From: Chara braunii
Lineage: Eukaryota > Plantae > Charophyceae
Length of the DNA: 52,951 bases
Direction: 5' to 3'
Assembly: GCA_003427395.1 (NCBI GenBank)
Contig: BFEA01000034.1
Span: 3,937,668-3,990,618, forward strand
Within the stretch, counting starts at the first letter, position 1, and each line of letters opens with the position of its first letter. Made by a program: the position numbers and the translations under genes. The notes under the pieces were generated by a model. That model saw only the letters and a program-made list of their open reading frames with translations, searched no databases and was not told where the DNA came from. Shown in pieces: positions 1-52,181 of this stretch.

Positions 1-2612
1 CCCCCCCCCCCCCCCCCCCCCCCCCCTTTTTCTGAAACATCCGAGTGGAAGGGTTCCAACGTGAAAGCGGTAAGAGAACTTCAAGGATTGACGCTTGCTA
101 TTGGTGATGAGAGATGGCTCCAGTCTATTGATGGGGAGCTTCACCTTCTGGAAACTGGGTCTACTGTCCCACATTATAACAGTCGCAAGCAATATCTTGA
201 TGGGCTTTGTCGTCAATCCCGAATGGTACACCGGACGACATCCCATATCTCGTCTCTCCTATTGCTGTGAGCTGAGCGGTACTATGTGCGCCACGTGTGA
301 GGGAAAAGAATCTGGACTTGTGGTGATGTCTACTTTAGCAGTTGTCGAGTGCTGTGGGTTGTGTGAGAGTGTGTGTGGTGTGTCATGATTTCCGAGAAAA
401 TTGTTTGGGCTTTGTGACTTGGCAAGGGGAAAAGAAACACAAAGTCAAAGAAAAAAACATGTGGCCTGTGTGTGGCATTGCCCTGTGCGTGGTTTGCTTG
501 TGGGTCGGAATTGCAGTGTTATGTCGGCTTCTATGTAGGTGTGCTTCTATGTTGCTGGTTTTGCTCCCGCATTATTTGTGTGCAATGGGCTTTGAGTGTG
601 ACTTTGTCAACTGTGTGTGCCAAGTGGGTGGGCATTGCAGTGGTATGCCTGCTTGTATGTGGGTGTTGTGCCACAATAGCAAATGCGTGCAGTGCAGTGC
701 CATGTGAGTTAAGTGGTGCTGATCGGTGAAACTATGAATTGCGCAGTGTCCATTGCTCTGTGAGACTATATGAGTTGCGCAGTGTCCATTGCTCTGTGAG
801 ACTATATGAGTTAGGGAATGAAGATGTAGGGGAGTTGAAGAGGAGTTGAAGAGGAGATGAAGGGGAGTTGAAGAGGAGATGAAGGGGAGATGAGGAGGAG
901 ATGCAATGGAGAGGATGTGGAGATGGAGGGGAGATGAGCTGGATATGAAGGGGATATGAAGAAGGGATGGAGTGGAGATGATGAGGAGGAGGAGGAGGGG
1001 GAGCAGGACGTGGACGAGGAGGAGGAGAAGAGATTAACAAAAAACAGGCATGTCATGTGGCAAGCGATGGGAGGAGAAGGAGAAGAAGGAGAAGAAGGAG
1101 AAGAAGGAGAAGAAGGAGAAGAAGGAGAAGAAGAACGAGAAGAAGAGGAAGAGGAGGACTAGGAGGAGGAGGAGGAGGAGGAGGAGGACCGCAGCTATGA
1201 GTGCGCCAACTTACATGGCGTGCTGGCTCCCTGCAGGCAATGGCATGCTGTTGTGCAAGGCGCGAGGAGAGTCACGAACATGGCAGCAGCAGTGCCAATT
1301 CGAACGGGAACAGGGATTGCCAGCAGCAGCAGCGCGTAGGTGAGTTTGGCAGCACGAGTGGGAAGGGGGGGTTGCGTGGGTCAGGGAGGCCACCAGTTCT
1401 CATTCAAAAAGAGAGGCCTGCAGGCCCTGTTTTTTCTTTTCTTTTTGAAAGCGGCGGCGGCCTCCACGAGGCTGTGGGAGGCAACCCAGGCTGTTTCCTG
1501 GCCGGTACCTCCGCCCAGCAAGAACCCGCTGGGAGCAACCGCATGCCAGGCGGCTTGGTGCATCAGCCGGTTCTACCAGGGGGCTTCCAGGCCGAGGAGA
1601 CCCCCCCGCTCGAACCGGGGACCAGCACTGGTTAGAGGTTGCTATGTCGATTGTGTGTCCCGTCTCATAGTTGAGCAGGTATCTACGCCGCTGTTTGAAG
1701 ATAATCTGACTCATCTGCATTACATAGATAAGAGCTTCATGGTCTAATAAACAACCTACAGAACGAGGTCACAGAGTTTTATACATACTAACAGTATATA
1801 ATTACGCGCTGCAGCTGCTGGCAATCCTTGTTCCCGTTCGAATTGACTAAATTGTTTAGGTTGTGTGGGTTGTATATTACAGTTTCGCAGAAAATTGGTT
1901 AGGTTGTGTGGGTGCTGCGGAGCAGTGGTACATGCATTGAATTCACTGATATGCAAGTCGTGTTGTACTGGTGTACTATCTGGATAGTACACAGTGCTAT
2001 GTCGGTTGATCCATACCGAGGACTATATGGAGTGGGTGATTGTTTAGGTTGTGTGGGTGCTGCAGAACAGTAGGACATGTGTTCAATGCACCGATATTCA
2101 AGTCGTGGTGTGCCGATGTAGTATCTTGATAGTACACAGTGCGATGTCAGTTTATCTATAGAGAGGACTATGGGGAGTGGGTAATGCAGTTGCTGTGTCG
2201 TAGTATGTGAACTGGGCACTACCATGCCAACTGTCGGTTATACATGGGCCTCGCCGCACCAGCACACGGAAGAAAAACAAAGAAAACTTATGCATCTGGA
2301 CAAAGCAGGCGGCAAAATACACTTGTTACTGTTATATACCAAATGGATGAATCATTCCATTTTCTGTGGAAAGATGCATTAGTTTCATTTTGTGTGCCGG
2401 TGTGGTCTGGAGCGTGCAACTAACTTGTTGATTTTTTTTTTCTCGCGACTTGCTGATCATTTTTCTGTGATCTTCAGATAAGGAACTTTTTCTTTGGCTG
2501 TTTTGCAGAAAGACATTCTGTGAGATCGCTGTGGTGTGGGTGTGGTGGGGAGTGAATAACTTTATCGTTTTTGGCATCCATTGGGACATTGTAAGAAGAG
2601 AGAAAGAGAGAA

Positions 2613-2647
<35 letters not shown>

Positions 2648-3858
2648 CAGAGATAAAGACAGAGAGAGAGAGAGATGTGGATCGTGGAGGAGCAGTTCGA
2701 CTCGTTGTTTTTTCTGCATAACCCTCGCCGCAACAATTCATGTCAGCAACTTACTGGAATACCCTAACTCCTCTTGTCTCCTTCTTCCTCTTTGCCACAC
2801 GGCGATCTCGCATGTAAAGATCATGACCATGGCCAGTCAACCTCGCCAGAAAATATACTCTTTGTACCCATAAAAAAACGCAAAAAAAGCGGGGGGGGGG
2901 GGGTCCTTCGGCCAGACGGAAGGAAGCGTGAGTGCATTATTGTCGTAATGCTTATTCAGACTCGCCGGTGGAATAGGAACCGGACTGACGCTCCCCAGAA
3001 TGGAAAAGGAGCCAGGATCGTAAGGTCCTGTTTAAAAAAAAAAAAAAAAACTGTGGATAAGACCATTTACTAAGTAAAAGAACGGAAAAACGGAGAAAAA
3101 CAATGAGCCACACTGCTCCTCCATGATCCACATCTCCTCCCCTCCCCCTCCCCCCTCCCCCCCCCTCTCTCTCTCTCTTTTTTCTTACAATGTTGAATGT
3201 CCCCATCGCTGACATGATGAGCATTACGTGACGGTCTACTAAACCACTATGTGGATAAGACAATTTAGAAAAAAAAAAAGAGAACAAAACGGAAGAAAAC
3301 AAAACAATGTCCCAATCACTGCCACCTGTCCTGGCGCTCACAAGAGCCTGACAGGGCATGCACGGTGAAAAAAAAAAAAGACACCAGCCCCAAAAACCCT
3401 ACGCACAGCGTTCTGGCACAGCCCCAACAATGCCCAACACGACAAAAATAAAGAAATCCCTCAGGATTCGTACCAAAACGAAACAGAACATCACCATTCT
3501 GGCACTGCCCTAATGATGGCCGAAACAACACCTGAAAAAAAAAAAACAAAAAAAAACTCGCATGCGACAAAGATCACCCAACACACCCACTAGTCCCGAG
3601 TGTCGAGAGGGTTTCATGCAAACGTTATGCGAGACACACCTTACAGTTTGATTACAACTTAATCATGCTGTCTGTGGTTTTGCAAGGCATGAGACGGAAT
3701 CCAGGGGTTGACGCTCTCAGTTCATGTCCGCCTTCTTTGGGGCAGGTGGGCTGGTGGATTGGGGTAGGGGGGAGGTGGGGCTGAGGCGGGAGAGAAAACC
3801 GTTGTCACCTCCTACATGTGTTCTCGTGCGCATCTACCAACATTTAAACACTATCAAC

Positions 3859-4536
3859 CTAGGCTACCAGGGTGGCCCGGGGTCACTTGCCCGGCCGGGC
3901 AAAGAAAGTAAAATAAAAATAAAAATATTTTTTAATTTTATTTTTTATTATAAATTTGGTGAAGAATTTCGATGTGACCCTGAGGCAAAAGTTGCTCATT
4001 GTATTTTTCTGCGTAAAATAGTATTTTTCTGCGTAAAATAGTATTTTTCCGGATTTTTTGGATTTTATTATTATTATTATTTTTTGCTGGGATCTAGGCT
4101 ACCAGCCGGGCGGCCCGGGTCCCGGGTGGCCAGCCCGTGCAAGGACCAGGGAAGTTCCCAGCAAACAAAAAAAAAAAAATCCAAAAAATCCAAAAAAATG
4201 CAGAAAAATAAACTGAACAACTTTTGCCTCAGGGTCACATCGAAATTCTTCACCAATTTTAAAATAAAAAATAAAACTTAAAAATAAGTTTTTTATTTTT
4301 ATTTTATTTTTATTTTTTTGGCCTGGCCCGGCAAGTGACCCCGGGCCACTCTGGTAGCCTAGGCTGGGATAGTATTTTTCCGGATTTTTTGGATTTTATT
4401 ATTATTACTTTTTTGCTGGGATAGTTTTTTTCGGATTTTTTGGATTTTATTATTTCTTTTTTTTTTTGCTGGGACCTTCCCTGGTCCTTGCACGGGCTGG
4501 CCACCCAGGACCCGGGCGGCCCGGCTGGTAGCCTAG
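3859..4536. mobile_element. hAT-like MITE (outer copy), TIR CTAGGCTACCAG, 8-bp TSD CTATCAAC
   Basis: CTAGGCTACCAG at 3859 and CTGGTAGCCTAG ending 4536; identical CTATCAAC at 3851-3858 and 4537-4544; 8-bp TSDs typify hAT. Confidence 0.85.
4094..4362. mobile_element. hAT-like MITE of the same family nested in inverted orientation, 8-bp TSD GCTGGGAT
   Basis: Same termini at 4094 and 4362; GCTGGGAT at 4086-4093 and 4363-4370; internal sequence is the reverse complement of the outer copy. Confidence 0.85.
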
Positions 4537-16744: not shown

Positions 16745-16863
16745 GGGTAAAGTCACTCTAGCACCATCTTAAATGTATCTGACCGCATTTACGCCTGCAC
16801 CTGGATGTATCAGGCGACAATTACGTCCAGAAATAAGTACAGAGTCTCAGTGTGAGTATGCCC
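16745..16863. mobile_element. PIF/Harbinger (Tourist-like) MITE, TSD TAA
   Basis: Ends GTGTGAGTATGCCC with degenerate left TIR; TAA on both sides; internal similarity to copy at 28270-28390. Confidence 0.7.
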
Positions 16864-17386
16864 TAAGCATTCTCACAAAAATAGTCGACTGGAAAGGAGT
16901 TGTACTTAAGATACCATTAGTAACCTTAATTTCACTGGAAAAAATAAACTTTTCTCAATCCAATACTGACTGGATTCATGTTTGATTTCCCAAACTCTTA
17001 TAAAAAAAACAGCAGTTATCGCGTGATGGTGTCCAGCAAGATACTTTCCCCATTGGATCCAGGGCCACCCGCTTTTTTTCATTTCGGGTCTGGCGTCAGG
17101 CCCAGGTGACGTCCACATGTAGTCGCTAATGTGGCGTGGCACAGAGAATTGTGACCGCACGCTGTCCAGTTTTGTCCTCTTCAGGTGCCATGCACGGTGT
17201 TCTGTTGTGCAAGGGACTCGGCCCATACAGGGCGACACATGACGCGTGGCGAGGCAGCGAAAAAAGAGCTGGAGCTCATGGGACACAACGTGCGGTGGAA
17301 CGGGAGGGGGTGCCTCTGTGGCCCACAGTGAACGTGCAAATGAGCCCGTGCAGTCTCCACATTGCTTTGGTTGCTTGATGATTGAA

Positions 17387-17423
<37 letters not shown>

Positions 17424-17562
17424 CCACCCACCCACCAACACACACATGCTCATTGAGCCCGGCCAGTGTGGTCTGCCCTGATCCACCACCGTTGACGCAA
17501 ACTCGCATTCACACTTTCCACATCGCTCTGTGTGGCTTCCCCAAAGCAACGGAGAGTGACCA

Positions 17563-17648
<86 letters not shown>

Positions 17649-17676
17649 NNNNNNNNNNNNACACACACACACACAG

Positions 17677-17708
<32 letters not shown>

Positions 17709-17846
17709 ACGCACACGCACACATGCACGCACATCGAGCCGGGGCAGTGCGGTCCACCCTGTTCCACCACCATTGACGCAAACTCACGTTCATGCTTTCT
17801 GCATCTCTCCATGTCGGTTCCATGAAGCAACGGAGAGTGACCAAAG

Positions 17847-17894
<48 letters not shown>

Positions 17895-18989
17895 AATAGG
17901 CGGTTGTACCGCGAATCCATCAGGCCTTTCTCTGTTGCAGCATTGATCAGTTGTGCTGTGACTAATGTGCATACACAATTGTGCTGCATCGATCAGCCTG
18001 GGTGGCCTCCCACTGCCTCGCTCTACTGCCGAGAATTGCGAGGGGACATTGTACCTATGTTGTCTCTTTCTTTCTCGCAGTGTGGATCGGCGTGGATTGA
18101 TAGCGTGATAGGTGACCACATGGGGAGTGAAGGGAGCAGGACGAAAAGGGGGAGAGGAACAACGTAGAAGAAGGGAGCAAGGAGGAAGTGGCAGAAGGAG
18201 GCGCCTCTGACAGAGGAGGGCGAGGAGGATAAGGCGGAGAAGAGGGAAGGACAAGGACGAGGTGGACCTTTTTTGGGGTTTCAGGGCATATTGGTCGTCT
18301 AGCGGGAGGAGGATGGACACATCAGGGGGAGAGGGCAGGAGGAGGAGCATGTGGTGCATGATGACGGGGCAGAGGGGGAAGTGGCGAATGAGAGCGTGAT
18401 GGCAGAACAGGAGGGGGAGGAGGAGGAGCAGGACGGAGAAGGGGTTGACGGAGAAGCGGGTGATGGAGGAGGAGGGGAAGGAGAAGAAGCAGATCGACGT
18501 TTTGAGAGGTGAATTTCTTTTTTGGGGGGTAAGGCGCGACTCGAAAGACCAGATAGGTGGTGGCAGAGGAGGGAATGCACTGGAACAAAAGGAGGGAATG
18601 CACTGGAACACAAGGAGGGGAGGAGGATGCTTGGGAGGACGGGGAAGAGGAGCAGGTGGTGGAGGATGACAAGGGGGAGGACGTGGCAGAGGACAAGGGG
18701 GTTGCTGAGGAGGGGACGGATATCCAAGATGAGGAGCGGGAAGGGGGGCAGGGTGGAACGTGAGGAGAGAGGAGAAGGAGGTGGTGGAGTGAGAGCGAGA
18801 GCAGCAGAACAAGATTGCAAAGCAGGAGAGGGTGCAGGAGGGATGGGGATGGCAGAGCTGGAGGGGGAGGACGAGAAGGAGGTGATGGAGCGGAAGGAGA
18901 AGGAGGAGGAAATTGATAATAGGGAGAACGACGACGATGTAGCAGAATACCCCCCCCCCCTCAAAATAGAAGTACGCTGCCACCCTGCA

Positions 18990-19033
<44 letters not shown>

Positions 19034-19986
19034 CAATTATACAAGCAATGCTTCAACAAGAGGGAACGGAGAGGTGCAATTATACAAGCAATGCTTCAAC
19101 AAGAGGGAACGGAGAGGGTGAGCAGCCCAAACTTCCTCCCTCTCATCGAAGCATTGCTCTCCATGCAATTAGGCGAGCAATTCTTCCACGACAGGGGAGC
19201 GGGACGGGGGAAGTAAGGGAGAGAGCAGGAGAGAGATCGTCGTATGTGAAGCCTTCGGAACCTCCCAAATGATAACGTTCCCACTTTTGTATCAAGGGGC
19301 CATGGGAGGTTGACTGTACAGGGCATGCACACATCCATGTCTGCACCAACTTGAAAACATGCATCCATCTGCCCAGTAGCGCCTATTGATTGTCTGACGG
19401 CAAGAACGTGGCGGAGGAGGAGGGGCAAGAGGAGACTGCAGTGGAGGACGAGGAGGCGGTGGAGGAGGGGGATGGGGGAGCAGCACATGTCCATCACATG
19501 TAGCCGCGCCGAGCATCTGCCTGTTATTGAAAAATAAAAGAAAATCACTTCACTCTTTTCTGAAGTCTTCAGTTTCATGGAAAAAAATTCTCCTTTCCAT
19601 CTTCTCTAAAGTTTCTTTGAGTTCAAAAATGTTTCTTTTCACTTCGACCTTGTCTGAATTTGTCTCAATCCATTGGGCCTGGCTTCCATTACGTTTAACT
19701 GCAAGGATCAGGCCTCTTTGGTGCCAGGTACACATGAACATGGCTACTTTTACGACTAGATTCGTGCTTCCTTTCTTGGGATAGGCATCGTACAAGTAGG
19801 GCCAGTCCCTTCGCCAAATGGTACACAACCTCACATGTCCACTCGTAACATGTAGATTGTGTTGAGTACTTCTTTGATGCAATGAAGGCAAAAGGTGGTC
19901 TCCATTCTTGCGGTAAAGGGAGAGGGGGGAAAGGGGGGAGGGGGAAAGGGGGCGGCCACAGAGAGAGAGAGAGTGAGGAGGTGGGA

Positions 19987-20019
<33 letters not shown>

Positions 20020-20131
20020 GAGAGGGAGAGAGAGAGTGGACCCTGTTCATGAACTTGGAATTGTCCCCATGAAAGATAAGATCTTTGCCATTGAAGTGAC
20101 GGGATCAACACGCCAAGGATCAAAAACTTAC

Positions 20132-20194
20132 ATTCAGACCATCCCTGGCCACCACCGCTGTTGCCTGATCGACAAACACTGCAAAACCAACAGG
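20132..20194 (-). CDS. RRM RNA-binding protein exon 2 (PVGFAVFVDQATAVVARDGLN; RNP1)
   Basis: CAG acceptor, GTAAGT donor, 63 nt phase 0/0 joining exons 1 and 3 into a complete RRM. Confidence 0.85.
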
Positions 20195-20395
20195 CTGGCA
20201 GGGAGACACAGGCAGAAAACAAAAAGCAAACGAATCACATACACACTCTCAGAGATGGACAAAGGCAGCAGCAAGAGCAGCAAGAAGTAAAGGCAGCAAT
20301 TGCAGTTTGTTAAGGATGTGTCGGTAATCAAGCTCCCACTAGAACCACACATTTTATTCATAGAAATGTAGACAGTGAACCACAACTCGTGTGAA

Positions 20396-20480
<85 letters not shown>

Positions 20481-21692
20481 GTGAGCCAGTTCCCCCCGTT
20501 GATTGGCCTCCACAGTCGGCGATATTTTCAGTTGAATCTGTACTACCTTCTTTGTGTACGCTTTAGCTTGGCCACAAAGTTGAAGCGTAAACAAAGAAGA
20601 AGGTAGCACACTACCCTCAAGCAACATGTAGGCGCAACAGCTACTCCCCTGGCTTGCTATGGTGAACAAAGCCCATCGGCAGTTACTCGAATGGCCATCC
20701 ATTTTTTACTTGGGTGCACTTAAATGACCCTGTGGGAGCAACATCTGACTCTATCCAACTGGAGGCATCCATGTTCACGAGTGGGTTCACAAGCAGAGCT
20801 TCGCTTGCTGACGTCCACGTTCAAGGAGAAAACGTTTAAACATACGTTTTTCAAAGAAAGAAAACCTAAACGCCAGCATGAGAGGAGAACCTAAACGCGC
20901 TTATCCACAACAACAAAGAGACAGAAAAGCACAACAATAAGAACCAAGTATTTCCTTGAAACACTAGAACGTTTTCTGGTGTTCCTTCTTCTCGGACGAT
21001 GGAATAGCACGATGGAAGCGTGCACGTTTTCTGGAGGTACGGTGTACGGGAAAGATTACTGTACGTCGACGAACGAACAGGCAGATAGCGGGAGAAATAT
21101 TAGGAAAATGCATTTTTTCTGAAGCTATGAGTACGGGAAAGGTGCTGGAAATCGGCGCGTGTATAGACTAAGAGCGGGAAAAATTTCTTTGTCCGGTAGT
21201 AGTAGATTTTGTCATTTTCTGTTTCGCCTGGATTTCACCTGGATGTACCCTCTGTTTGTTGTGGTTTGCTTTGGTTTGTATAGATCTCGAGTGGATTCTG
21301 GCTCTAAATCTCGTGATACTGAGCTCCGATCGCTGTAGATTGTGAAGGAACTCTGTCTTTCGTAGATTTGGTAGATACGGAAGATTAAGTAGGATCGATA
21401 CCTCCAGGTACGTAAAATGGACAAACCTTCTGGATGGCGCGCGTTCTTTCTGAGAAAGATCAGTCTTGCGCGGGTTCTGGCTGCACGAAGCGGCGGGAAA
21501 ACGGGGGAGCCTGCCAGCAGGTTGGACGGTGGCACCGTAGGAAACGCGCGAGAACTGGTTTTTATTTTATTTTATTTTATTATTTTTGTAGGAAAGCTCG
21601 GAAGTGAGAAACGCAGTAGGCTTGAGTGACGGCAGCAAGGAAGTTTCAAGTATAAGTACGCTAGTTCTTAGGCATCAAAGCATCTCGAACCA

Positions 21693-31141: not shown

Positions 31142-31731
31142 GGCCCTCGTTCCACACCACTTGTGTTCAAGAGCGAAGCGAAAAATCATCCTTCCATCGC
31201 CCCCTTAGAGCGACCAGCTTTGTTTTCACTTTTTTGCGTCCCAAGGGTGCGCCCTTGAAACTCAAGGGCGACACAGCCCAAAAAAAATCGCCCTTGAATT
31301 CAAGTCGCCTCCCGGAGGTACCTTGAGTTCAAATGCCAGTGGATACCGCCAGCACTCCGAGTGGGGCCTTTTTTCCCTTCTCTTTTTTTCCAGCAGGAGA
31401 TCCTGGTCCAGGATTGGTCAAGCCGTGGAGTTCTGTTTCAAGTGCAGCTTGTTCAAGGGTTTCCTCAAGTGTACATGGAACCATAAATTGAGTAAGTGTA
31501 AATTAATCACAATTTCTCATTTATTGAGTAAGTGTAAATTAATCACAATTATACCTTTCTCGGCCTTTTGGCTAAGATCAAGTCTAGTATCTGTTCTGAT
31601 CAGTTTAATATCTGATCCGTGGTCCATCGGGCCATATTAAAAAATAAATAAAAATAAATAAATTAATCACAATTTCTCATTTAGTGAGCACTTGAAACTC
31701 AAGTATTTTCAAGTGGTGTGGAAGGAGGCTC
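31142..31731. mobile_element. PIF/Harbinger non-autonomous element, TSD TAA
   Basis: TAA|GGCCCTCGTTCCACACCACTT ... AAGTGGTGTGGAAGGAGGCTC|TAA. Confidence 0.8.
31551..31635 (+). pseudogene. U2: 3'-truncated U2 snRNA retrocopy with A-rich tail and 16-bp TSD
   Basis: ATACCTTTCTCGGCCTTTTGGCTAAGATCAAGTcTAGTATCTGTTCT.ATCAGTTTAATATCTGAT = plant U2 5' end; branch-point pairing motif mutated, no Sm site; TAAATTAATCACAATT at 31535-31550 and 31659-31674. Confidence 0.92.
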
Positions 31732-31864: not shown

Positions 31865-32876
31865 GGGCCTTGTTCCACACCACTTCACTTCAAACTCGAG
31901 TGCGCACTCGAGTTCCAATCGTGATGAAAAAGTACTTGAGGCCTGGACCCCACAGGAATGCAGAAAGGAAAAACTTTGTCGCATAACTGTTTCCAGACCC
32001 CACCACCCGCCGAAGAGGTCCTGGAAAGTTGAGATGTATTCCGCAGAGCTGTTTCCGAGGACCCAACAGCCCCCTTTTTTGGCCTGGAAGAGGCCAGGAA
32101 TTTGTTTTCACTTCGTTCGCGACCTGGAAAAGTCCCGTAGGAGGGAAAATTTCCACGATTTTGTGTCAAGTGGAGAGTATCGAGGGGGGCGACATCTCGA
32201 AAGTTTCCAAGGCAAGGTCTCCTCCCCCGGTCAGACGAGAAGGTGTCCACCCACGGGTCTTGTTCCGCAAGTGCCGCCCCAACGTCACCCACTACGGGAC
32301 CTCACCGGTTCCTGTGCTCCCCAGCCGGCCACCAAGACAAACCACCACTTTCCCTTTCAGGATGGTGGCCATGGGAGTTTCCTGTTAGGGGAAATTTTGG
32401 CGTCATTTTGCCGCAAAACTCTCCGCGGTGGGGGCCCCACATAACTCTTTCCAGAGTTTCCAAAGCTCTTCCACCGTCTTTTGGGGGTAGACGTCTTCTC
32501 CAGTGGAATTCCTTTGGGGTCCAGGCATGAGTCACGTTTCGTACCACTCAGCCCTCGAGTCCGCCCTTGAAATGAGCAGGAATGGTGCTGCAATAGCTCA
32601 CGCTAGGTTCAACAAGGACAAATGCGGTACAACAAGGAGAATACACATATCGGCAACACCGTTTTCAAGTGCAGCTCAAGTGTGGTCAGAGAGGTGACTT
32701 GAAAAATGAGGAGGTTTGCCTATGCCGCATTTGAGCCGCACTTGAGCTTTTCCCGCTCGTTTGCTAAAACCCAGAAACCTAATCGTGGTCGGGCCGTGAT
32801 TAATGAAACTCAAGGGCACCGTGGAATGGTGTTGGGCAAAAAATACTCGAGTTTTGAGTAGTGTGAAACGAGGCCC
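31865..32876. mobile_element. Second non-autonomous PIF/Harbinger-like element with related TIR
   Basis: GGGCCTTGTTCCACACCAC at 31865 and GTAGTGTGAAACGAGGCCC|TTA ending 32876; left TSD not preserved. Confidence 0.6.
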
Positions 32877-42871: not shown

Positions 42872-42900
42872 CAAGAGGTCTGAGTGTCAGCATGCCTTAA

Positions 42901-43563
42901 ACCACCAATACACGGCCTCAGCCTTGCAACAAAATAACTTATCGCCACAACATTAAAAGGAGGGCTCGGGGCATGGTTGGAGCATCAGAAGGTTTTCAAA
43001 TTTTTGGGCCCATTCAAATCCGTATGTCCCAAAAAACAAAACAAGCTTTGGCCGTGATTGCAGTTGGATACACTTTTTGGAGTACCGCCCTCAGTGAGGG
43101 CACTTCGGCATAACGAGGAACACAGGGAGTACGACTGTCAGACTCACAAAAAAAGAAATTGGCCGTGAAAGTGGTTGGTTACATTTCGAACGGCGCTAGT
43201 GTGAGTATGCCCTCAGCAAGGGCGTTTTGCGCAAGAGGAATATGCGCTGCCTTGCTGGCAGGGAAATAAAGAAAGAAAAAAAGAGAAAAAAAGAAAAAAC
43301 AACAAATTGAATGTTTCCCTCTCCCCGTAATAGTGGTCAGATGAACTATGGAAAGTGATCGTTTGAGTATGGCCTCCACAACGTCCTTTCACGACATCAT
43401 TGACCTCTGGCATGTTTTTTCCTTTCTATTTTTTTTGTCCTTCAGGTAGACCGTCGGCATCAGTGCCACTTCCAAAATTCCCACTGCAGGTACCCACACG
43501 CAGAAGGCTCGGACAATAGCGGCGCTCAGTGGGCAGGTAGCTTCGGTCAGGTGTACTGGTGGT
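42901..43563. mobile_element. Non-autonomous TIR element flanked by TTAA (ACCACCARTACAC termini)
   Basis: TTAA|ACCACCAATACAC ... GTGTACTGGTGGT|TTAA. Confidence 0.75.
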
Positions 43564-44325
43564 TTAAAAGAAAGTTGGTGTGTCTGTGTGCCCTAAGTCG
43601 TTCGACACTCCTTGGGGACGCGATTCCGAGGATTCCATCGTCGTTCCACCTGTCCTCGGAGCCGATTTTCGGAACAGAAATGTGAAAACACTTCGAGGAC
43701 AAATCCTTGGGCTCCGAGGATTTCCCAGCCAAATCGTCCTCAGCTCCAAAGGACCTCGCGAGGTCCTTTGGAGCCCGAGGATCCGCGATTATCGGGGTGT
43801 TGGCGGCGAGTCCAAAAGGAAAAATGGAGGTCGAAGGTGGTTCACTGATGATCCACCGTCCGGAAGACGGACATCGCGGACCGTCCTCGTCCAAAACGTC
43901 CACCAACGGCCTCGTCATTTTACCGTTGGCGGTGATTGGCGGTACGGCCCTGTCGGTTCGTCGGGCGGCCCCACGCTGGTGCCGTGGCTAGCATCGGACG
44001 TCTTCGGCCGGGTCCTGGAGGGGTCGTGGCGTTCCCACCGGCTTCCCAACGGTCAAAAATACGGATTTTTTAAGCGTCCTCCCCCAGCCGGTGCTTGCAG
44101 CAATTTCGTACGTTGGGGTCTTCCCTCTCGCAACGTGTGTCTCCGGTCGTCGCGATCGCGACAGCACGTGTTCTGTCTCGGCTGGCCTGTCGTTCATGGC
44201 TGACCTGTACCGCAGGCTGCCTTTGCTGCTGCTCGTCGCTTGTCGTTGTCATCTTCCATATCTGCATCCTCGGTCGTGTCCCTGGGAGGAAACAAACGAG
44301 GCGAACGCCAAAAACGGGCGGGAAG

Positions 44326-46007
44326 ATGGAGACACCACAGACGAAGACCACGTTGTCCGTCGGGGCTGGGGGGTCGTCACATCAGCGTTGCAGCACTGCG
44401 GAAGGCGGAAGGCGGCAGGCGGCTGTACGACCCAACTTTGTACAACCACCTGCCGTCCCACGAGATTCTGTTGCCTCCGAGTGACGACGACGGTGACGAC
44501 ACCCGATCCTCAACGGTTCCTCTGGGAAGCGGTTCGACGCAGGATTGGATGGGGAGCCAGCTGTACAGACAGACATCAACGCCGACGTACACTGATCTGC
44601 TGGAGAGGCGGACCCCCGTTGGTTATGACGCAGGACTCGTAGATCTCAGCTTCGGTTTGAGGTCTGGGAGTGCAGAGGACGTCACACACACCGTTCTCGT
44701 GAACCCAACTTCCGACACCAACCACGCACCGCCTTCAGTGGGGCTGTCGGGCCTTCCTGATACCCACGCCTGGTGTTCTGGTCAGTCGGGCGACGAACGT
44801 GGAGTCCTTTTGCGAAGGCGGGGGGCAGTGGTTACAGCAGGTGTGGCCGTGTCGAGGACAAGGACAGGTGGATCGACGACGCCAACCGGTAGAATCGACG
44901 GACGAGGGGATGACGATGAGGGCTCCGCTGCGGAGGTCGTGGGACGAAAGGTTTGGGATGATCATCGGCGACAATCCCGTCAATCGAGCAAGTCCGCCAT
45001 AACGAGAGGGGTGGCGAACATTAATGTGAGGGCGGACGATGTATTCGGCGATTGCGATGGTGCAGGGGGCGAAGATTGCGCTGCAGGCAACGGGAGCAAT
45101 GACAACGACGAGGACGATGACGGGAAGATGGAGATTCGTCCGATAGGGAGGAAGCGGGGAGGGTCAAGGGCCACAAACAAGTCTACAGAGCCGCGCGCGG
45201 GGCGGGGAGGCAAGAAGGGTGCGGGAGATACGTCGACATGTGAGGTAGCAAAAAGCAGGGATTTTTGGACCGTGGACCACATGATTGCTGTGATCCGAGC
45301 TAAAAGAGACCAGGACTTGCATCTGGCCGGCCTCGGCCACAACAGCGGAAGGATGAAGACGAAGACATGGAAGTGGGACGACGTCGAGAAGAGGCTCGTG
45401 CAGATGGGGTTGATGAGTAGAAAGGCCGAGGACTGCAGGAAAAAATGGGACAACCTGTACCAGCAGTTCAAAACCGTGCACAAGTTCATGGGCGAATCGG
45501 GGAAGCCAAATTTCTTCACACTAACGCCGGGAGAGAGGAAGGAGCGGGGGTTCGATTTTCGGATGGATGAACGTGTGTATTCGAAGATGAAGGCCATGTC
45601 CAGGGGCGATCACACTATACACCCCACGAATCTCGCGGACACAGGTGTGGCCGAAGGTGTTCAAATGCCCTGTCCACGTGGAGGTCGGAATGAATCCGGC
45701 GGTAGCGAGGGATGCGGGGATGGACAGGACGACGATCAGGGATCGACGAGGGATTCAACGTTCAGCGGCGTTGGTGGTGGCGGGGGCGGCAGACGGAAGA
45801 ATGTAAGACAGCAGACCTTCGACACGATTGCGGACGACGGTGGACAGCGCGAGCAAGAGGCAGTGCTCAATTCTGATGAGGCAATGCAACATTCTGGAGC
45901 GAGAGCTAGAAGTGCAGAAGGAACACTACGTGAAGGCCGACCAGACGAACTTCATGATGTGCAACGCCCTTCTGGAGATTGCTAAAGCGATCCGCGAGCG
46001 ATCCTAA
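44326..46007 (+). pseudogene. Harbinger Myb/SANT-like (trihelix GT-type) DNA-binding protein, frameshifted
   Basis: FWTVDHMIAVIRAKR..KWDDVEKRL..DCRKKWDNLYQQFK trihelix domain; ATG 44326 joins the long ORF if a 7-bp duplication (GCGGAAG, ~44398-44411) is removed; second frameshift ~45833 leads to coiled-coil tail QCSILMRQCNILERELEVQK..LLEIAKAIRERS*. Confidence 0.85.
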
Positions 46008-46954
46008 TGCCGCTGGGCCACACATGTCCTACGTCCACGCGAATGCCACGTGTGCACTTCCGGAGCATCGGCGTTTACCGTCGTCCTGCGTGCTGCAGTG
46101 CGGTGTTGGGCAGGTTGTGGAGAGACGGCGGATCGTTTTTGGCACCACAGTTTTTTTTAAGCGTGGATTTGTTGGATGAGTGTGAAGGGTATTCATTGTT
46201 GTCATGCCCTGCGGCGCGTCCTTCGGTTTTGCATTAGGACCTCCGATTTTGAATACTGTTTAACGTTGTGAGGCGTTGCCGTCACGCGTGGATGGCGATC
46301 CACCAGGGTCTTGTTTGGGGGGGTGTCGGTGAAGGAATAGGTGTCAGGGTGTGTTTTTCGGACGGGAGGGGGGGAAATGGCGGACAGGGGTACCTCGAGT
46401 TTTTGGGGGTGGCGGACGAAGGATATGTGGCGGGATCTTTCGACCTCCCCCAGGGTCCTCCCGCGCGCCCGCATGCGTTGTTGGCCATGCGAGGGATCAA
46501 CAGCAGCCGGTGGGGAAAATGGTCCGTGCGTGATCGGCGAAGGGGCGGACTCTTGTGGATGGCGAGGCGTGTCCATGGTGTGCTGCGAGAGCGCGATATG
46601 TACAAAAGGAGAGTACGAGGGGCACTCCGTACGGCAATGATTCATTTCCCACTGTTCCAACGGCACTGTCTGTGAATTGAGTCGTCGCCGCAGGCCTGCA
46701 CATCCGCTTCGTCGCTCCACGCTTCCGCTTTGGGCTCCGCTGGCAGTGCCCCTTCATGCGCATCAAGCACGTGCGCCTCCTCGAACGTCGCCATCATTGT
46801 CGCGGCTCCGTGGCCAGTGCCCCTTCCTGCGCATCATCCACGTGCTCCTTCGGCCACGTGCCCGTCGTCGACTTCCACGCGTCCACCATCCACGTGGTCC
46901 TTCGTCGACGTCCTCCTTCGTCCACGTGGTCGTCGTTCCCGATTTGCGGATGAG

Positions 46955-48556
46955 ATGGCACCGAGGAACGCCTCAGGGAAGGGCAGGAAAGATAGCGGAG
47001 TAGGGGATGGGGGGGAAACCCAAAAAGGCAGAGGCCACGTGCCAAAGTCAAAAAGGAAGCGCGTCGATGAGGCTAGCTCCGAACACAATGACGACTTCCA
47101 GGCAGAGCAAGTGGTGATGGTGGATCCGCAAGGGACAACAGGGGCGATGCGATTGGGTTTTGGGCGGGATGGGGTGTCGAGGGAACAACTGTCCCCTATC
47201 AAACAGAGCATCGTTGTTGGTGGCGCCGGGATGTTGCCAAGGACCCCGAAGGCGGCAGGGGTTGTCATCACGGAGGCGCGCGTTTCGAGGCAACTTCCGG
47301 CGGTGGTGGGCCAGGGTCATCCACGTCAGCCACTCCCCCTGCAATAGGCGGGGGGTTCACATGGAGGCAAAGCACCGTCCGCGCAAAAGGGCGATACGAC
47401 GGCGAGCGACACTCGTACGTCGGCGGCGGATCACAGCAGTAGAAGCGTAGTCGCCGAAGGTGCGGAGGAGGCGAGGGTCGATGACGTCCGTCACGACGAT
47501 GGGAGAAGAGAAGGAAAGCGGGAGGGCGATGACGACGACGACCGTCCACTTGTCACGAGGTTGAAGGGAGCGGCAAAGGAGGACGATGTGGAGGAGAGGT
47601 CGAAGTTGTGGGTTGATTGCGACGCTTTCTGGGATCAGGGCCCGGGGAAACCATTGAGGGAGGCGGTAGGTGACTGCGCGGACTACTTTGTCGCCATCGC
47701 TAACGGAGGTGCAGGAGCTGAACCGCCTGCGATGCTCGTAATGCCGCCGAATGATGTGCCGCGCTTCAAGATCGAGGACCCTGCGAAGCGCGAACCCGCT
47801 TTGTGCAGAGCGCGCAACGTGGAAAAACTGGTGTTGCGCACCATCCACGGCTGGATCTTCAAATCGTCGTCGAGGTCGACTGGCTTCGCTTGTGCAGAGT
47901 CGTACATCAGCGTGGACTTAGCTACAGACGTCGCACGAGCAGTTTGGCAGGGATACGAATGGTCGAACGTGGTTTCCCCTACCCTGGTCTACCACACGCT
48001 GGCGATAAAGATGGACGTTCCTTTGTGGTTCGCGGGGGTGAAGATTGTGGACCGGCCTGAAGACGACGACATGGCGGCGCGGCAGGAGGCGACAATTCTT
48101 CGCATGGTGGACTGCTGGACAGATGCAGTCTGGTGTGGATAACGGGCGGATGGCGGCCGTGTGAAACAGGAGAGGTAGTCTCGGCTTGCGGATGATTGTC
48201 TTCGAGCGTTGTTGAGCGCGTGCATGTGGATCATGCGCATGGGTGGTGACGACGACCGATCGCACTACGAGGCGTGGTTCTACGCGTCCATGGTCGCCAA
48301 ACCCACAATGATAGCAGCGGGGTCCTACATCTTCAACTGGCGGCGACACATCGTCGACACCGCCAACCTCGTCTTGGATCGTATAGGGAAGGCTCACCTG
48401 ACGTTGGGAGATTACCCGCATTGCATTCCGGAATGGTCTGATTGTGGGTTGGTGTTCGGGCACAACGCGGCCCTGAAGAATGCAGCGGAAGCCGCGAAAC
48501 ACGGCTGGATCGGCAGCGGGCCCCCGGCGGAGGATGATGGAGATGACGACAGTTGA
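46955..48556 (+). pseudogene. Third transposon-internal gene, ~533 aa, unknown family (three in-frame stops)
   Basis: Track ORFs 46730-47347, 47561-48142 and 48209-48556 share one frame, broken only by TAG 47345, TAA 48140 and TAG 48176; basic NLS-like KSKRKR in disordered N-terminus, then a ~320-aa complex W/C/Y-rich domain. Confidence 0.75.
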
Positions 48557-49756
48557 CACGTCGGTTCGTCCACAACGCAGCGGCGGGGTGCGGATCGGCG
48601 ACCGATTGGCGAGGGGGATCACGAAACGACCAACTGGCCGCCTTCGACTGCAGACGTTGGCGCACGGGCGGGACAAGTGTTGGCGGGTGTTGGTGGTTGA
48701 GCAGGGGGAAAGGTGAGCTGGCCGGTCCTGCGCAGCTCGAACGACGTGGCGACGTCAGCAGGTGGCAGGACTGGCAGCAGGCGGTCCAACGGCGTGGCGA
48801 CGTCAACAGATGGCGTCGTAGTACATGTCTTGTGAACGATTTATTCGTGTTTTTTTTTATTTTTTATTTTTTTTTATTTTTATTTTTTATCGGAGCACAC
48901 TTTACACTTGTGCTCCACAAAAGGGTTTCTTAACTCGGTGGATGACACCACCGAAATGTACGTAAACGGCAGGAGTAGTGCGTCTTTGGTGTGGGTCGCT
49001 TGAACGGTGGACAGTCAGGAGAGAAGTGGATCGCCGCCTGAACTTTGTTGTGTTGTTCAAATGATTTCCTCAAATTTATGTTTTTGTGTCGACGGCGTGT
49101 GTGTGCATGCTTACGATTGCGTACGCAGTGCTTCTTTTATTGTCGTCTGTGTGGGTTTATCATGTAACGCAGGCGTTAATGACCATCGCATGCTCGTCCA
49201 CATCTTCTTTTGTATGCGGCATACTCATTCGGTCGTACGACTCGTGGCGTCGTTATCATCGCCGACACCTGAGAAAGCAAAAGAAAACAAGGAAATAGGA
49301 AGGAACCTATCCACACACTTTCATTGTCATCCTTTTATGTTTGCTGCCCGTGTTTCCCTTCATAATGCCATCGCTAAAACCTGATGATCGCGCGCACCGC
49401 ATGAAAGCCAAAATAAACGAAAAAACAAATAAATGGATGGTCACCGCGCAGTTGCCGAATAAACACATCTTTCGTGAGTTTTTCTTTCATTTCTTTTTCA
49501 ATGCACGTGAGTTATTAGTGGAACAACGAAGCTTTTCCGACTGCATTTAGCAAACACAAAGACGCGCAGACGACATGCATGACAGACATTCCATGTAGTT
49601 GAGAAAAAACATGTGTGCTCGAAAGAAGGATAGCAATTGAACGCACGAACATGTCCTCACACAAACATCATAAGAAAGCACACACCGTTCAAGCTCAAGG
49701 AAAACTGCGCTGTAAAGCACTTGCGAAACAGCGGGCTGACGAATTTGTTTGTGCCG

Positions 49757-49789
<33 letters not shown>

Positions 49790-50072
49790 CCCCCACCCGC
49801 CCCTCCCTATTTCTCGTCCCGGATTCCACAGAAATTGCGCGGGAATACCATTTCGTCGGCTACAACAACAATGAACCCGCACCACTGCCAATGATCGACG
49901 GACTGGACAACAAGTCTGCCCTCAACTACAACAAAAAACACCTAAAAACAACCTGTCCGCAACGGCGAACCCTCCGAAGCAATCATGCGCATAAGAGGAA
50001 GACGTAGGCGTTGTCGATCGATGATGGCGGAACACGAGTTGAAGGGGACAAACAGGCCGGCGGCAGGCAGGA

Positions 50073-51424
50073 TCACATGTGTTTCATTCGCTCCGCCAGC
50101 GCATTGCGGAGCGAGTGAGCCGCGTGCGTCGAAGTCAACATCGTCACCGGCTGCGGGGGACGATGAATCCCCAGGTCCACGCGACGCCTCACCCCGTTCT
50201 CATCGACCTCCCACAACAAATTCTCGTTGAACTCGATACCGGCATCGAGCAGGATGTTGTGGAGAATGCAGACTGCCGTGAACTGTTGCAGTAGAGTGTC
50301 GAGGTTCGTCTTGTGCGTCCGAAGGAAGAGCCTCTACATCCCCTTCAACCTCCCGAGCACCCTCTCCACAACACCTCTTGCGACCTTCTGTTTCGTGTCG
50401 AACCTTTCCTCGTCCGGGTGCTGACTGATTCCTCCGTATGACACCACTACCCATTCAGAAGGAGGATACCCGTTGTCGCCCAAGATGTATCCGTTCGTCC
50501 TCACCCCTCTCGGCAGCGTGACAAGCGGCCCTCGAAACAACAGTCCCTCTTCCGCTCGCCTCGACAGACTTGACAGCTGGATCACCCTAATGTCGTGGCA
50601 GCTCCCAGGATATCCAACGAACACGTCAAGCACGCGCAGATCCAGGTCCACCACCACTTGCGCAATGACGGAGAAATGGTGCTTGCGGTCGAAGTAGTTC
50701 TCGCTCAGCGCGTTCGCCGGTTTGTCCACGTAGATGTGTGTGCAGTCAACTGCGCCATGGCAGTTGGGAAAACCCTTCTCCAGAAACGCCTGTAGCACGA
50801 CGTGTTTCCGCAGCCCAGTCGGCCACGATATCTTGTCCCCGTACGCCCTCAACAAAGCGGCTGTCACATCGCGCACAGCTCGAACTCCAGAAGTCTTGCC
50901 TATGCCGAAGGATGATGTGCTGTTCTCGTATGACTCTCCTGTAGCCCACCTATAGAGCGCGTACGCGACGATCTGCTCTGGCTGAAGTGGTTCCCTGTAA
51001 AACGTCACCTGTCATTGCAAATGAGGCGCACAGGCTTCGCTGATCTCCATGAACACTCTCCTGGACATGCGGAGCTTTTCACGGAAGTAGTCGTCTGTCG
51101 CGTCATCGCACACCCGCAAATCCTCCCAAGTCCCGCCAGTTCTCCGCCTCATCCACCAACGTGGCGTCGCCCGAGGAAGCAAACCGCACCCGATTGCAGC
51201 GCACAGCTGAACCACGGCCTCCGAAGTGGCGATGCAGTCCGGGGCGTCCAACACCCTCTGCAACAGAAGCCTCTGCCGCCGCCTCGAAAGCGCTGCCTTC
51301 ATGCGCCCGGCCCGGCCGCCCTCTCCAATTGGAAATGACGGACAACGACAACTGCAGCCGCCGCGACAGCTGTCTTCTCCCTCGTCGACAACACAACACG
51401 GACATCGCCATCGCAGCCCTCCAT
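50073..51424 (-). pseudogene. PIF/Harbinger (HARBI1/ALP1-like, DDE_Tnp_4) transposase, inactivated
   Basis: FREKLRMSRRVF, ALYRWATGESY HTH, GAVDCTHI (D), PGSCHD, LGDNGY (D), RGVVERVLGRLKG (E), CILHN; stops TGA 51012-51014 and TAG 50334-50336; 5-bp duplication frameshift near 51306-51315. Confidence 0.93.
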
Positions 51425-52129
51425 GACGCCCTTCCAACACGAAAAACAACGTCCACAGCCACCCACCTGCGTGTACCTCTGCCACCACGATTGAAGACGC
51501 CTGCAACCAGGTGAGGAGGACAGCCCTGCCTAACGATGTTCTGCCCCGGTTGGAGCGTCCGCCCACCACCGCTGAAGTAAGGAACCGCCGCGCGGCTCCA
51601 CGTGGCGAGCGCAACTGCTGATCAGACGTCTTCGTTTTGCCGCGTCGACCACACTTGAGCGTTTCGCCGCGTTGACCACAGTGGTGGTGCGGCGGCGCAG
51701 AAATACGCAACGCGATGGAAACCGAAACCCTGCGAGGCGTGGACTGCCCCCTCGACGACCCGCCTGTGCGCCGCCACCACGTCGCTACGCAAGAAGAAAA
51801 TTCGAATTTCGAATTTCGAACGGGGCCGTTCCCGCCTTGCCGATTTTCTTTTCCAGGGCCCGTGACGCATTCCCGTTGTTCGCCTTTTGGACCACCACGA
51901 CTCCTACACGGACATCCTGATTCGGAGGCCGGACAAGCCCCTCGCGGCCGTCTGTAATCTCATGAAACTGGCCGCGGGAGGGCCCCGAGGATTCGTCCTC
52001 GGGGCGATTCTCCGAGGACAGGTGGAATGACACCTCGAAAAATCAATCTTGGACCCCGGCCTGTTCCATTTCCGGGTAGACTGTGAGGACCCCGGCCTCA
52101 AAATCTTATTGGCAATTCAAGTGCTGTTC

Positions 52130-52181
<52 letters not shown>

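Follow-up and report, generated by a model that had tools for sequence, protein, structure and literature searches.

PIF/Harbinger elements are the textbook two-protein DNA transposons. The window that we analyzed, a stretch of 52,951 nucleotides from the alga Chara braunii (assembly GCA_003427395.1, contig BFEA01000034.1, positions 3,937,668 to 3,990,618 of the forward strand), contains one decayed PIF/Harbinger copy between positions 43597 and 52046. This copy belongs to a family whose autonomous members carry three genes: a Myb/trihelix gene, a DDE transposase and, placed between them, a third open reading frame (ORF3), which in the window spans 533 codons plus stop (46955-48556, forward strand). 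We read the family as a three-gene Harbinger lineage in which ORF3 supplies an accessory factor or cofactor, and we give this reading as a whole a probability of about 0.6.

The three genes of the window copy

An earlier note on this DNA, made from the letters alone, had described a Myb-like gene on the forward strand, ORF3, and a convergent transposase on the reverse strand, and all three are present as it described them. The Myb/SANT gene, of the trihelix type (44218-46007, forward strand), was recognized by the Pfam domain Myb_DNA-bind_4 (PF13837, E 3e-9), which covers residues 340-422 of the forward frame 44240-45985 and thus lies at about 45257-45505. Comparison by tblastn with intact relatives located two frame changes in this gene, near 44405 and near 45830; its own C-terminus (...QKEHYVKADQ..LLEIAKAIRERS*) is conserved across subfamilies and is not in the frame of the long ORF given by the ORF finder.

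The transposase (50073-51424, reverse strand, 448 codons) matches DDE_Tnp_4 (PF13359, E 5.3e-24) and Plant_tran (PF04827, E 8e-11) at 50334-51008 and is 89% identical over 412 amino acids to P0167, an intact protein of 448 amino acids against which its limits were set. It is interrupted by stop codons at 51012-51014 and 50334-50336 and by a 5-bp insertion near 51305. ORF3 is a single frame with no frameshift and three stops, each of them one base away from a sense codon (CAG>TAG at 47345, CAA>TAA at 48140 and TTG>TAG at 48176); the sister copies have sense codons at all three sites, so these stops are private to the window copy. Decay is therefore light and alike in the three genes, as had been proposed. 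The 3' ends of ORF3 and the transposase face each other across a non-coding spacer (48557-50072), which is AT-richer and diverges at a roughly neutral rate.

ORF3 is inherited with the Myb and transposase genes

Eleven loci (L001-L011) were fetched from the same assembly by way of annotated ORF3 or transposase models. Ten of them were usable, L001-L008 reached via ORF3 models and L009 and L010 via transposase models, and all ten hold ORF3 in a Harbinger context, one of them as a neighbouring fragment. L003, L004, L005, L007 and L008 have Myb sequence on one side of ORF3 and a convergent transposase on the other; L002 ends after its left terminal inverted repeat (TIR), Myb and ORF3, and L001 and L006, which derive from internal deletions, retain a family TIR. 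The reciprocal test gave the same picture, since the two loci reached through their transposase also hold Myb and ORF3 in the same order. Wherever the genes survive, the arrangement is Myb, ORF3 and convergent transposase, and this holds in three subfamilies, two of which (those of L007 and L010) are only 34-45% identical to that of the window in ORF3, 40-47% in Myb and 60-69% in the transposase. At the level of the annotation, at least 13 of 43 gene models of the ORF3 family adjoin a DDE_Tnp_4 model by gene number, counting the best 120 transposase matches.

To compare the histories of the genes we built identity matrices from query-anchored alignments of the three genes in eight copies. Pairwise identities of ORF3 and transposase were correlated with a Spearman coefficient of 0.96, and those of ORF3 and of transposase with Myb at 0.80 and 0.77, respectively; the pairs are non-independent and these values are descriptive. 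Maximum-likelihood trees of the three genes have their main splits in common, grouping L003, L005 and L009, then the window copy and L004, then L008, L010 and L007 (L008 is missing from the Myb tree). Myb, ORF3 and transposase are thus one co-inherited module, which is what the earlier note had suggested from their similar decay. Among the loci and gene models examined no ORF3 homologue was seen outside a Harbinger context, and no TIR or target-site duplication (TSD) belonging to ORF3 itself was found. On these grounds, and on those of the next section, it is highly probable that ORF3 is a selected gene of the element.

Three further arrangements were seen in the fetched loci. L004 holds, at 16856-20820, a divergent Harbinger in which Myb and transposase are about 1.4 kb apart and a profile search finds no ORF3; its genes are 30-38% (Myb) and 64-68% (transposase) identical to those of the window, and it represents a lineage without ORF3 or else arose by deletion. 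L003 holds, at 2141-4080 on the reverse strand, a fragment of another subfamily in which only about 270 bp separate Myb (41-43% identity) from a downstream remnant of ORF3, its final ~115 residues in an open frame (36% identity); an internal deletion is the probable cause. In L011 (10001-11347 and 11560-12130) an intact transposase of 448 amino acids, P0206, stands directly beside an assembly gap. Its subfamily, with 11 near-identical members, is probably young; neither Myb nor ORF3 could be detected over 10 kb around this transposase, the gap cutting the locus right after the gene.

ORF3 has evolved under purifying selection

The ratio of nonsynonymous to synonymous substitutions (dN/dS) was calculated codon-wise by the Nei-Gojobori method on a nucleotide alignment of five copies. 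The whole of ORF3 gave values of 0.27-0.43 (0.27-0.52 at the widest), with bootstrap upper limits of at most 0.59, and not the values near 1 that the earlier note had named as evidence against its proposal. Its C-terminal domain, which begins at about 47555 in the window, gave 0.20-0.35 between lineages and 0.46 for the closest pair; the core of the transposase gave 0.20-0.27 and 0.43, and the whole Myb gene 0.46-0.67 and 1.08, for the same two kinds of comparison. As an off-frame control, the ORF3 sites read in the two wrong frames gave 0.9-1.8. Synonymous divergence (0.25-0.55) was close to the divergence of the intergenic spacer between copies (K 0.24-0.48). Purifying selection on ORF3 is as strong as on the transposase core and, given a low ratio in frame and a ratio of about 1 or more off frame, most of the divergence arose while ORF3 worked; the few private stops fit a brief period of neutral decay after insertion. 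The grounds on which the earlier note would have abandoned its proposal thus do not refute it.

These results bear directly on the view that ORF3 is a passive passenger, either a captured (transduplicated) fragment of a host gene or a later nested insertion. It would agree with the lack of a recognizable domain in ORF3 and with the finding that every sampled copy of it is broken somewhere. However, dN/dS of 0.27-0.43 in frame against about 1 or higher off frame is not what a passenger should show, nor are equal position and orientation in three subfamilies at 34-45% identity, trees congruent with that of the transposase, and the lack, in what we examined, of repeats or duplications of its own and of homologues elsewhere. 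We regard this view as very improbable and already largely refuted.

Extent and termini of the element

The Chara family has all the features that define PIF/Harbinger, that is, a DDE transposase, a Myb gene, TIRs and a TSD. A full-length member measures about 8.8 kb (for example L003 5740-14576). End alignments place the family termini at TTA followed by GGGCGTCGTTCGACAC(N)CCTC on the left and at GAGG(N)GTGTCGAACGACGCCC followed by TTA on the right, and the TIR GGGCGTCGTTCGACAC(N)CCTC is found on both ends of L003, L004 and L005. The 3-bp TSD reads TTA on each side in L003 and L005, and TCA/TTA in L004; of seven copies, five have TTA or TAA as their left flank (TTA in L002, L003, L005 and L006, TAA in L001). 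Duplications of the TWA type, anticipated for such an element, are therefore present in the sister copies.

In blastn comparisons with L003, L004 and L005, which are full sister copies, homology of the window extends from 43597 to 52042-52046. The earlier note had placed one Harbinger element here, correctly, with limits of 43640 and 52031 that proved too narrow. On the left, a TIR remnant, GTCGTTCGACACTCCTTGGGG (43597-43617, forward strand), lacks the first four nucleotides, GGGC, which in the family form are preceded by TTA; on the right the copy is without some 65 nt, including the terminal TIR. Because both ends are damaged, its own TSD cannot be read. What we have in the window is thus a dead, slightly truncated member of a multi-copy Chara braunii PIF/Harbinger family.

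The inverted repeats that had been taken for the ends of the element exist where they were placed, at 43640-43661 and 52010-52031 (the latter on the reverse strand), and an inverted-repeat search finds these 22-nt partners 95% complementary. They are subterminal, with the true TIRs further out: the left member is 43 nt inside the left end, and about 80 nt of family sequence follow the right member in full copies. The motif of the left repeat, which lies in a region rich in CCGAGGA/TCCTCGG, also occurs in L003 and L004, and 7 of the 15 sites of this heptamer in the window are within about 0.5 kb of subterminal DNA.

Two observations concern the sequence just outside the preserved copy. Positions 43590-43596 read GCCCTAA, the exact reverse complement of the TTAGGGC of sister copies, that is, of the TSD plus the first four TIR nucleotides; a 7-mer match of this kind has a chance of about 6e-5, and the left end seems to bear the scar of a very short inversion or of a repair event. 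Beyond the right end, 52047-52170 is unrelated sequence: the 12-mer GGACCCCGGCCT occurs in it twice in direct orientation, ahead of a run of about 60 A residues (52103-52165). An insertion, perhaps a retroposon with a poly(A) tail, may have removed the right TIR here or moved it away. A search of the 900 bp of the window that remain did not find the missing right end.

ORF3 is probably a separate gene from Myb

Since the Myb and ORF3 frames are on one strand and about 950 bp apart, ORF3 could in principle be one or more downstream exons of the Myb gene, in which case the element would encode a Myb-ORF3 fusion and one other protein. Several annotated models do join a Myb domain to ORF3 (P0013, P0014, P0019, P0024, P0035, P0043 and P0166). 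Nevertheless, the Myb frame reaches its own stop through a conserved C-terminus (...LLEIAKAIR...) that the fused models skip; the conserved ATG of ORF3 is precisely the point at which these models enter it; models with ORF3 only also exist (P0016, P0017, P0051 and P0060); and the 0.95-kb spacer between Myb and ORF3 diverges at a neutral rate. Moreover, this annotation removes in-frame stops as introns (P0016, at L008 14286), so its introns are unreliable here. For these reasons we take the fused models to be artefacts of the predictor, and consider a Myb-ORF3 fusion improbable.

RNA reads were also inspected. Reads of three oligo-dT runs of Chara braunii, mapped to 43600-49500 at 80% likeness, cover the Myb gene and the C-terminal half of ORF3 sparsely, at about 0.5-5x, and come mostly from other copies; no spliced read links Myb and ORF3, at this very low depth.

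Many Chara gene models (among P0001-P0166, P0016 being at L008 10001-15512) are pieces of this transposon, some of them Myb-ORF3 fusions. Several ORF3-only models bear the names 'Reverse transcriptase domain-containing' or 'Helitron helicase-like' in UniRef, and no such domain is present in them. Dozens of models in this genome are pieces or artificial fusions of the element, some named 'Myb-like', and masking is advised.

The ORF3 protein

A profile search against 1.84 billion representatives gathered relatives of ORF3 in 137 clusters at 50% identity. All ten relatives that were looked up, the weakest included, are from Chara braunii, and every protein relative of ORF3 carries the annotation 'hypothetical protein CBR_g...' of this species, which marks the window as nuclear DNA of the alga. 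The gene measures about 530-600 codons, and its architecture of start, linker, domain and tail is kept across subfamilies. The start, M-x-x-R-G...G-K, is conserved and followed in the three subfamilies by a basic cluster (KSKRKR, KGKRVR or RKRK) that resembles a nuclear localization signal and gives the protein a nuclear-looking character, judging by its sequence. A disordered, poorly conserved linker of 150-200 residues leads to a C-terminal domain of about 320 residues with the motifs IHGWxFKS, MDLPLWF, EDRxEDDDMAAxQE, MWxMRMxGDDxRSHYEA and DWLGxGP, and to an acidic tail; the isoelectric point (pI) of the domain is about 6 in two subfamilies.

AlphaFold2, run on a diverse alignment of 59 sequences, models the C-terminal domain as all-alpha with about a dozen helices, at a confidence (pLDDT) of 74.7 and above 85 in the core; this run replaced one on an alignment of close relatives, which was unusable (pLDDT 36.5). 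Searches for known relatives returned nothing convincing. There was no Pfam match at E up to 1 with pieces of ORF3, full-length relatives or 59 family members, and no match in a profile search of the PDB. Foldseek against the PDB gave a best E of 0.35 for the model, the best VIA-align Z of 8.7 was to designed helical repeats and within the helical-bundle noise of the tool, ESM Atlas hits had template modelling (TM) scores of at most 0.33, and the look-alikes in two language-model atlas searches scored at most 0.82. Profile-profile comparison with the transposase and Myb of the element itself gave a probability of at most 0.2%, hence there is no sign that ORF3 arose from either of them by duplication.

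A protease of the Ulp1/C48 type was considered because of the motifs HGW... and ...DCG..., and was rejected: divergent members do not conserve the Cys of DCG (they read ASCSF or SIGV), some 200 residues separate His from Cys when about 60-70 would be required, and the model is all-alpha, not alpha/beta and papain-like. As the C-terminal domain is near neutral (pI about 6), a DNA-binding surface is not suggested; it is unlikely that the ORF3 product is a nuclease or a DNA binder.

Comparison with other transposons

Mobilization of canonical PIF/Harbinger elements needs two proteins (PMC2836001; PMC13668399). Rice Ping/Pong, maize PIF and zebrafish Harbinger3_DR resemble the Chara family in combining DDE_Tnp_4 with a separate Myb/SANT-like gene (trihelix/MADF-type), and canonical elements share with it short TIRs, subterminal repeats and a 3-bp TWA duplication, in Chara TTA. 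They differ in having two genes, whereas the Chara family has between these a third gene of about 530-600 codons that is conserved and selected, and in size, the Chara element being long at about 8.8 kb.

Extra genes inside Harbinger TIRs are not without precedent. HarbingerS elements of oomycetes carry a SET histone methyltransferase, and the PHISTA TET+ families of rust fungi a TET/JBP dioxygenase plus a further non-Myb protein (PMC12730594); in both, as in Chara, the extra gene is inherited with the transposase, so that they offer a three-gene precedent. Their extras are recognizable enzymes from hosts or from other transposons, while that of Chara is an orphan all-helical protein; PHISTA elements are also without a Myb gene and make TA duplications (PMC12730594), unlike the Chara family with its full canonical pair of Myb and transposase and its TTA duplications. 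The earlier note had suggested that the three-component system could be undescribed. This holds for the ORF3 protein family; the idea of a third Harbinger gene is already known from the SET and TET/JBP elements. We found no paper on Chara braunii Harbingers or on their third gene in the literature searched, which did not extend to Repbase.

Outside the superfamily, VANDAL21/Hiun of Arabidopsis (MuDR superfamily) encodes VANA, VANB and VANC, the last an element-specific anti-silencing factor (cited in PMC12730594). Factors of this kind are marked by sequence-specific binding to the repeats of their own element and, upon expression, by loss of DNA methylation. Like the Chara family it is a three-gene DNA transposon with lineage-specific proteins that lack known domains; the superfamily is a different one, and the likeness would be one of functional analogy only.

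Non-catalytic nuclear proteins that are encoded by the element and are needed for transposition, or modulate it, include MURB of MuDR and TnpA of En/Spm-CACTA. TnpA binds subterminal repeats, a role that the Myb-like protein has in Harbingers. Both belong to other superfamilies and are unrelated to Chara ORF3 in sequence.

A proposed role for ORF3

As a large, old and diversified lineage keeps ORF3 under selection of the strength seen for the transposase, ORF3 presumably does something that the element needs, and an accessory factor for propagation of the element, in whatever sense, is likely. In the mechanism that we propose, the product would enter the nucleus by means of its basic N-terminal cluster, and the tryptophan-rich, near-neutral, all-helical C-terminal domain would bind proteins, acting as an accessory factor needed for spread of the element. 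It could do so as a cofactor of the Myb/transposase machinery, which would assemble on the subterminal CCGAGGA-rich repeats. A cofactor specifically of the transposition complex is the most likely single role, which we put forward tentatively, its chances being somewhat short of even.

Alternatively, ORF3 could act outside the cut-and-paste reaction as an anti-silencing, host-interaction or chromatin-targeting factor, by analogy with VANC; a lineage-specific, fast-evolving protein, it would shield its element family against epigenetic silencing or direct it to permissive chromatin. ORF3 is an orphan family of a single lineage; its rate of evolution between subfamilies exceeds that of the transposase (34-45% against 60-69% identity); its start is basic and of nuclear type and its tail acidic; the ORF3-free Harbinger copy of L004 fits a dispensable helper; and transposons with epigenetic modifiers or regulators are documented, as reviewed in PMC12730594 (VANDAL, HarbingerS with SET, and TET/JBP elements). 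Against this, Pfam, PDB profile and fold searches give ORF3 no likeness to chromatin or methylation enzymes or readers and, within a subfamily, its constraint matches that of the transposase core, and it does not evolve fast. We consider such a role rather unlikely; it ranks not far below that of a cofactor of transposition, which we prefer.

Several points weigh against the three-gene reading with an accessory ORF3. A fully open ORF3 was found in no fetched copy: that of the window has three stops, those of L002 and L008 have one each, that of L010 is open for about 600 codons and breaks near the end, and P0016, the 'intact' model of 528 amino acids, owes its openness to a predicted mini-intron that removes the stop codon at L008 14286. 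The copy at L004 16856-20820 has no ORF3, so that ORF3 may be non-universal, dispensable or lineage-restricted. No splice joints were present in the RNA reads; at so low a depth neither transcripts nor their strand can be defined, and a Myb-ORF3 splice may have gone unseen. The comparison covers few copies (11 loci), sampled non-randomly. Prediction of a complex of transposase, Myb and the C-terminal domain of ORF3 scored 0.00, in a run in which alignments were unused and the partner fold was uncertain; it counts neither way on binding.

Among the algae, Chara braunii is one of the nearer relatives of land plants, and PIF/Harbinger elements have been a source of repeatedly co-domesticated gene pairs such as ALP1/ALP2, HDP1/HDP2 and HARBI1/NAIF1. 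Through ORF3, the transposition machinery may have a subunit not known before, or a transposon a new means of handling host silencing; given the closeness of Chara to land plants, its Harbinger family is a candidate source of lineage-specific host genes. A stronger claim, which we hold to be doubtful, is that ORF3, as an orphan all-helical nuclear factor, founds an undescribed class of transposon accessory proteins, being either an obligatory third component of Harbinger transposition in Charophyceae or an element-specific counter-silencing factor, so that the two-protein model would fail there.

Neighbouring sequences in the window

Directly upstream of the Harbinger copy, 17-nt inverted repeats at 42897-42913 and 43551-43567 (TTAAACCACCAATACAC and GTGTACTGGTGGTTTAA) stand 637 bp apart, and the pair may mark a small unrelated inverted-repeat element. 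Elsewhere in the window, Harbinger-like termini of the form GGGCC[TC][TC]GTT[CT]CACACC... with TAA or TTA flanks occur at 31142-31157, 31865-31880 and 32861-32876; the pair 31865/32876 or the pair 31142/32876 could bound a non-autonomous element of 1-1.7 kb, similar to a miniature inverted-repeat transposable element and belonging to a related family.

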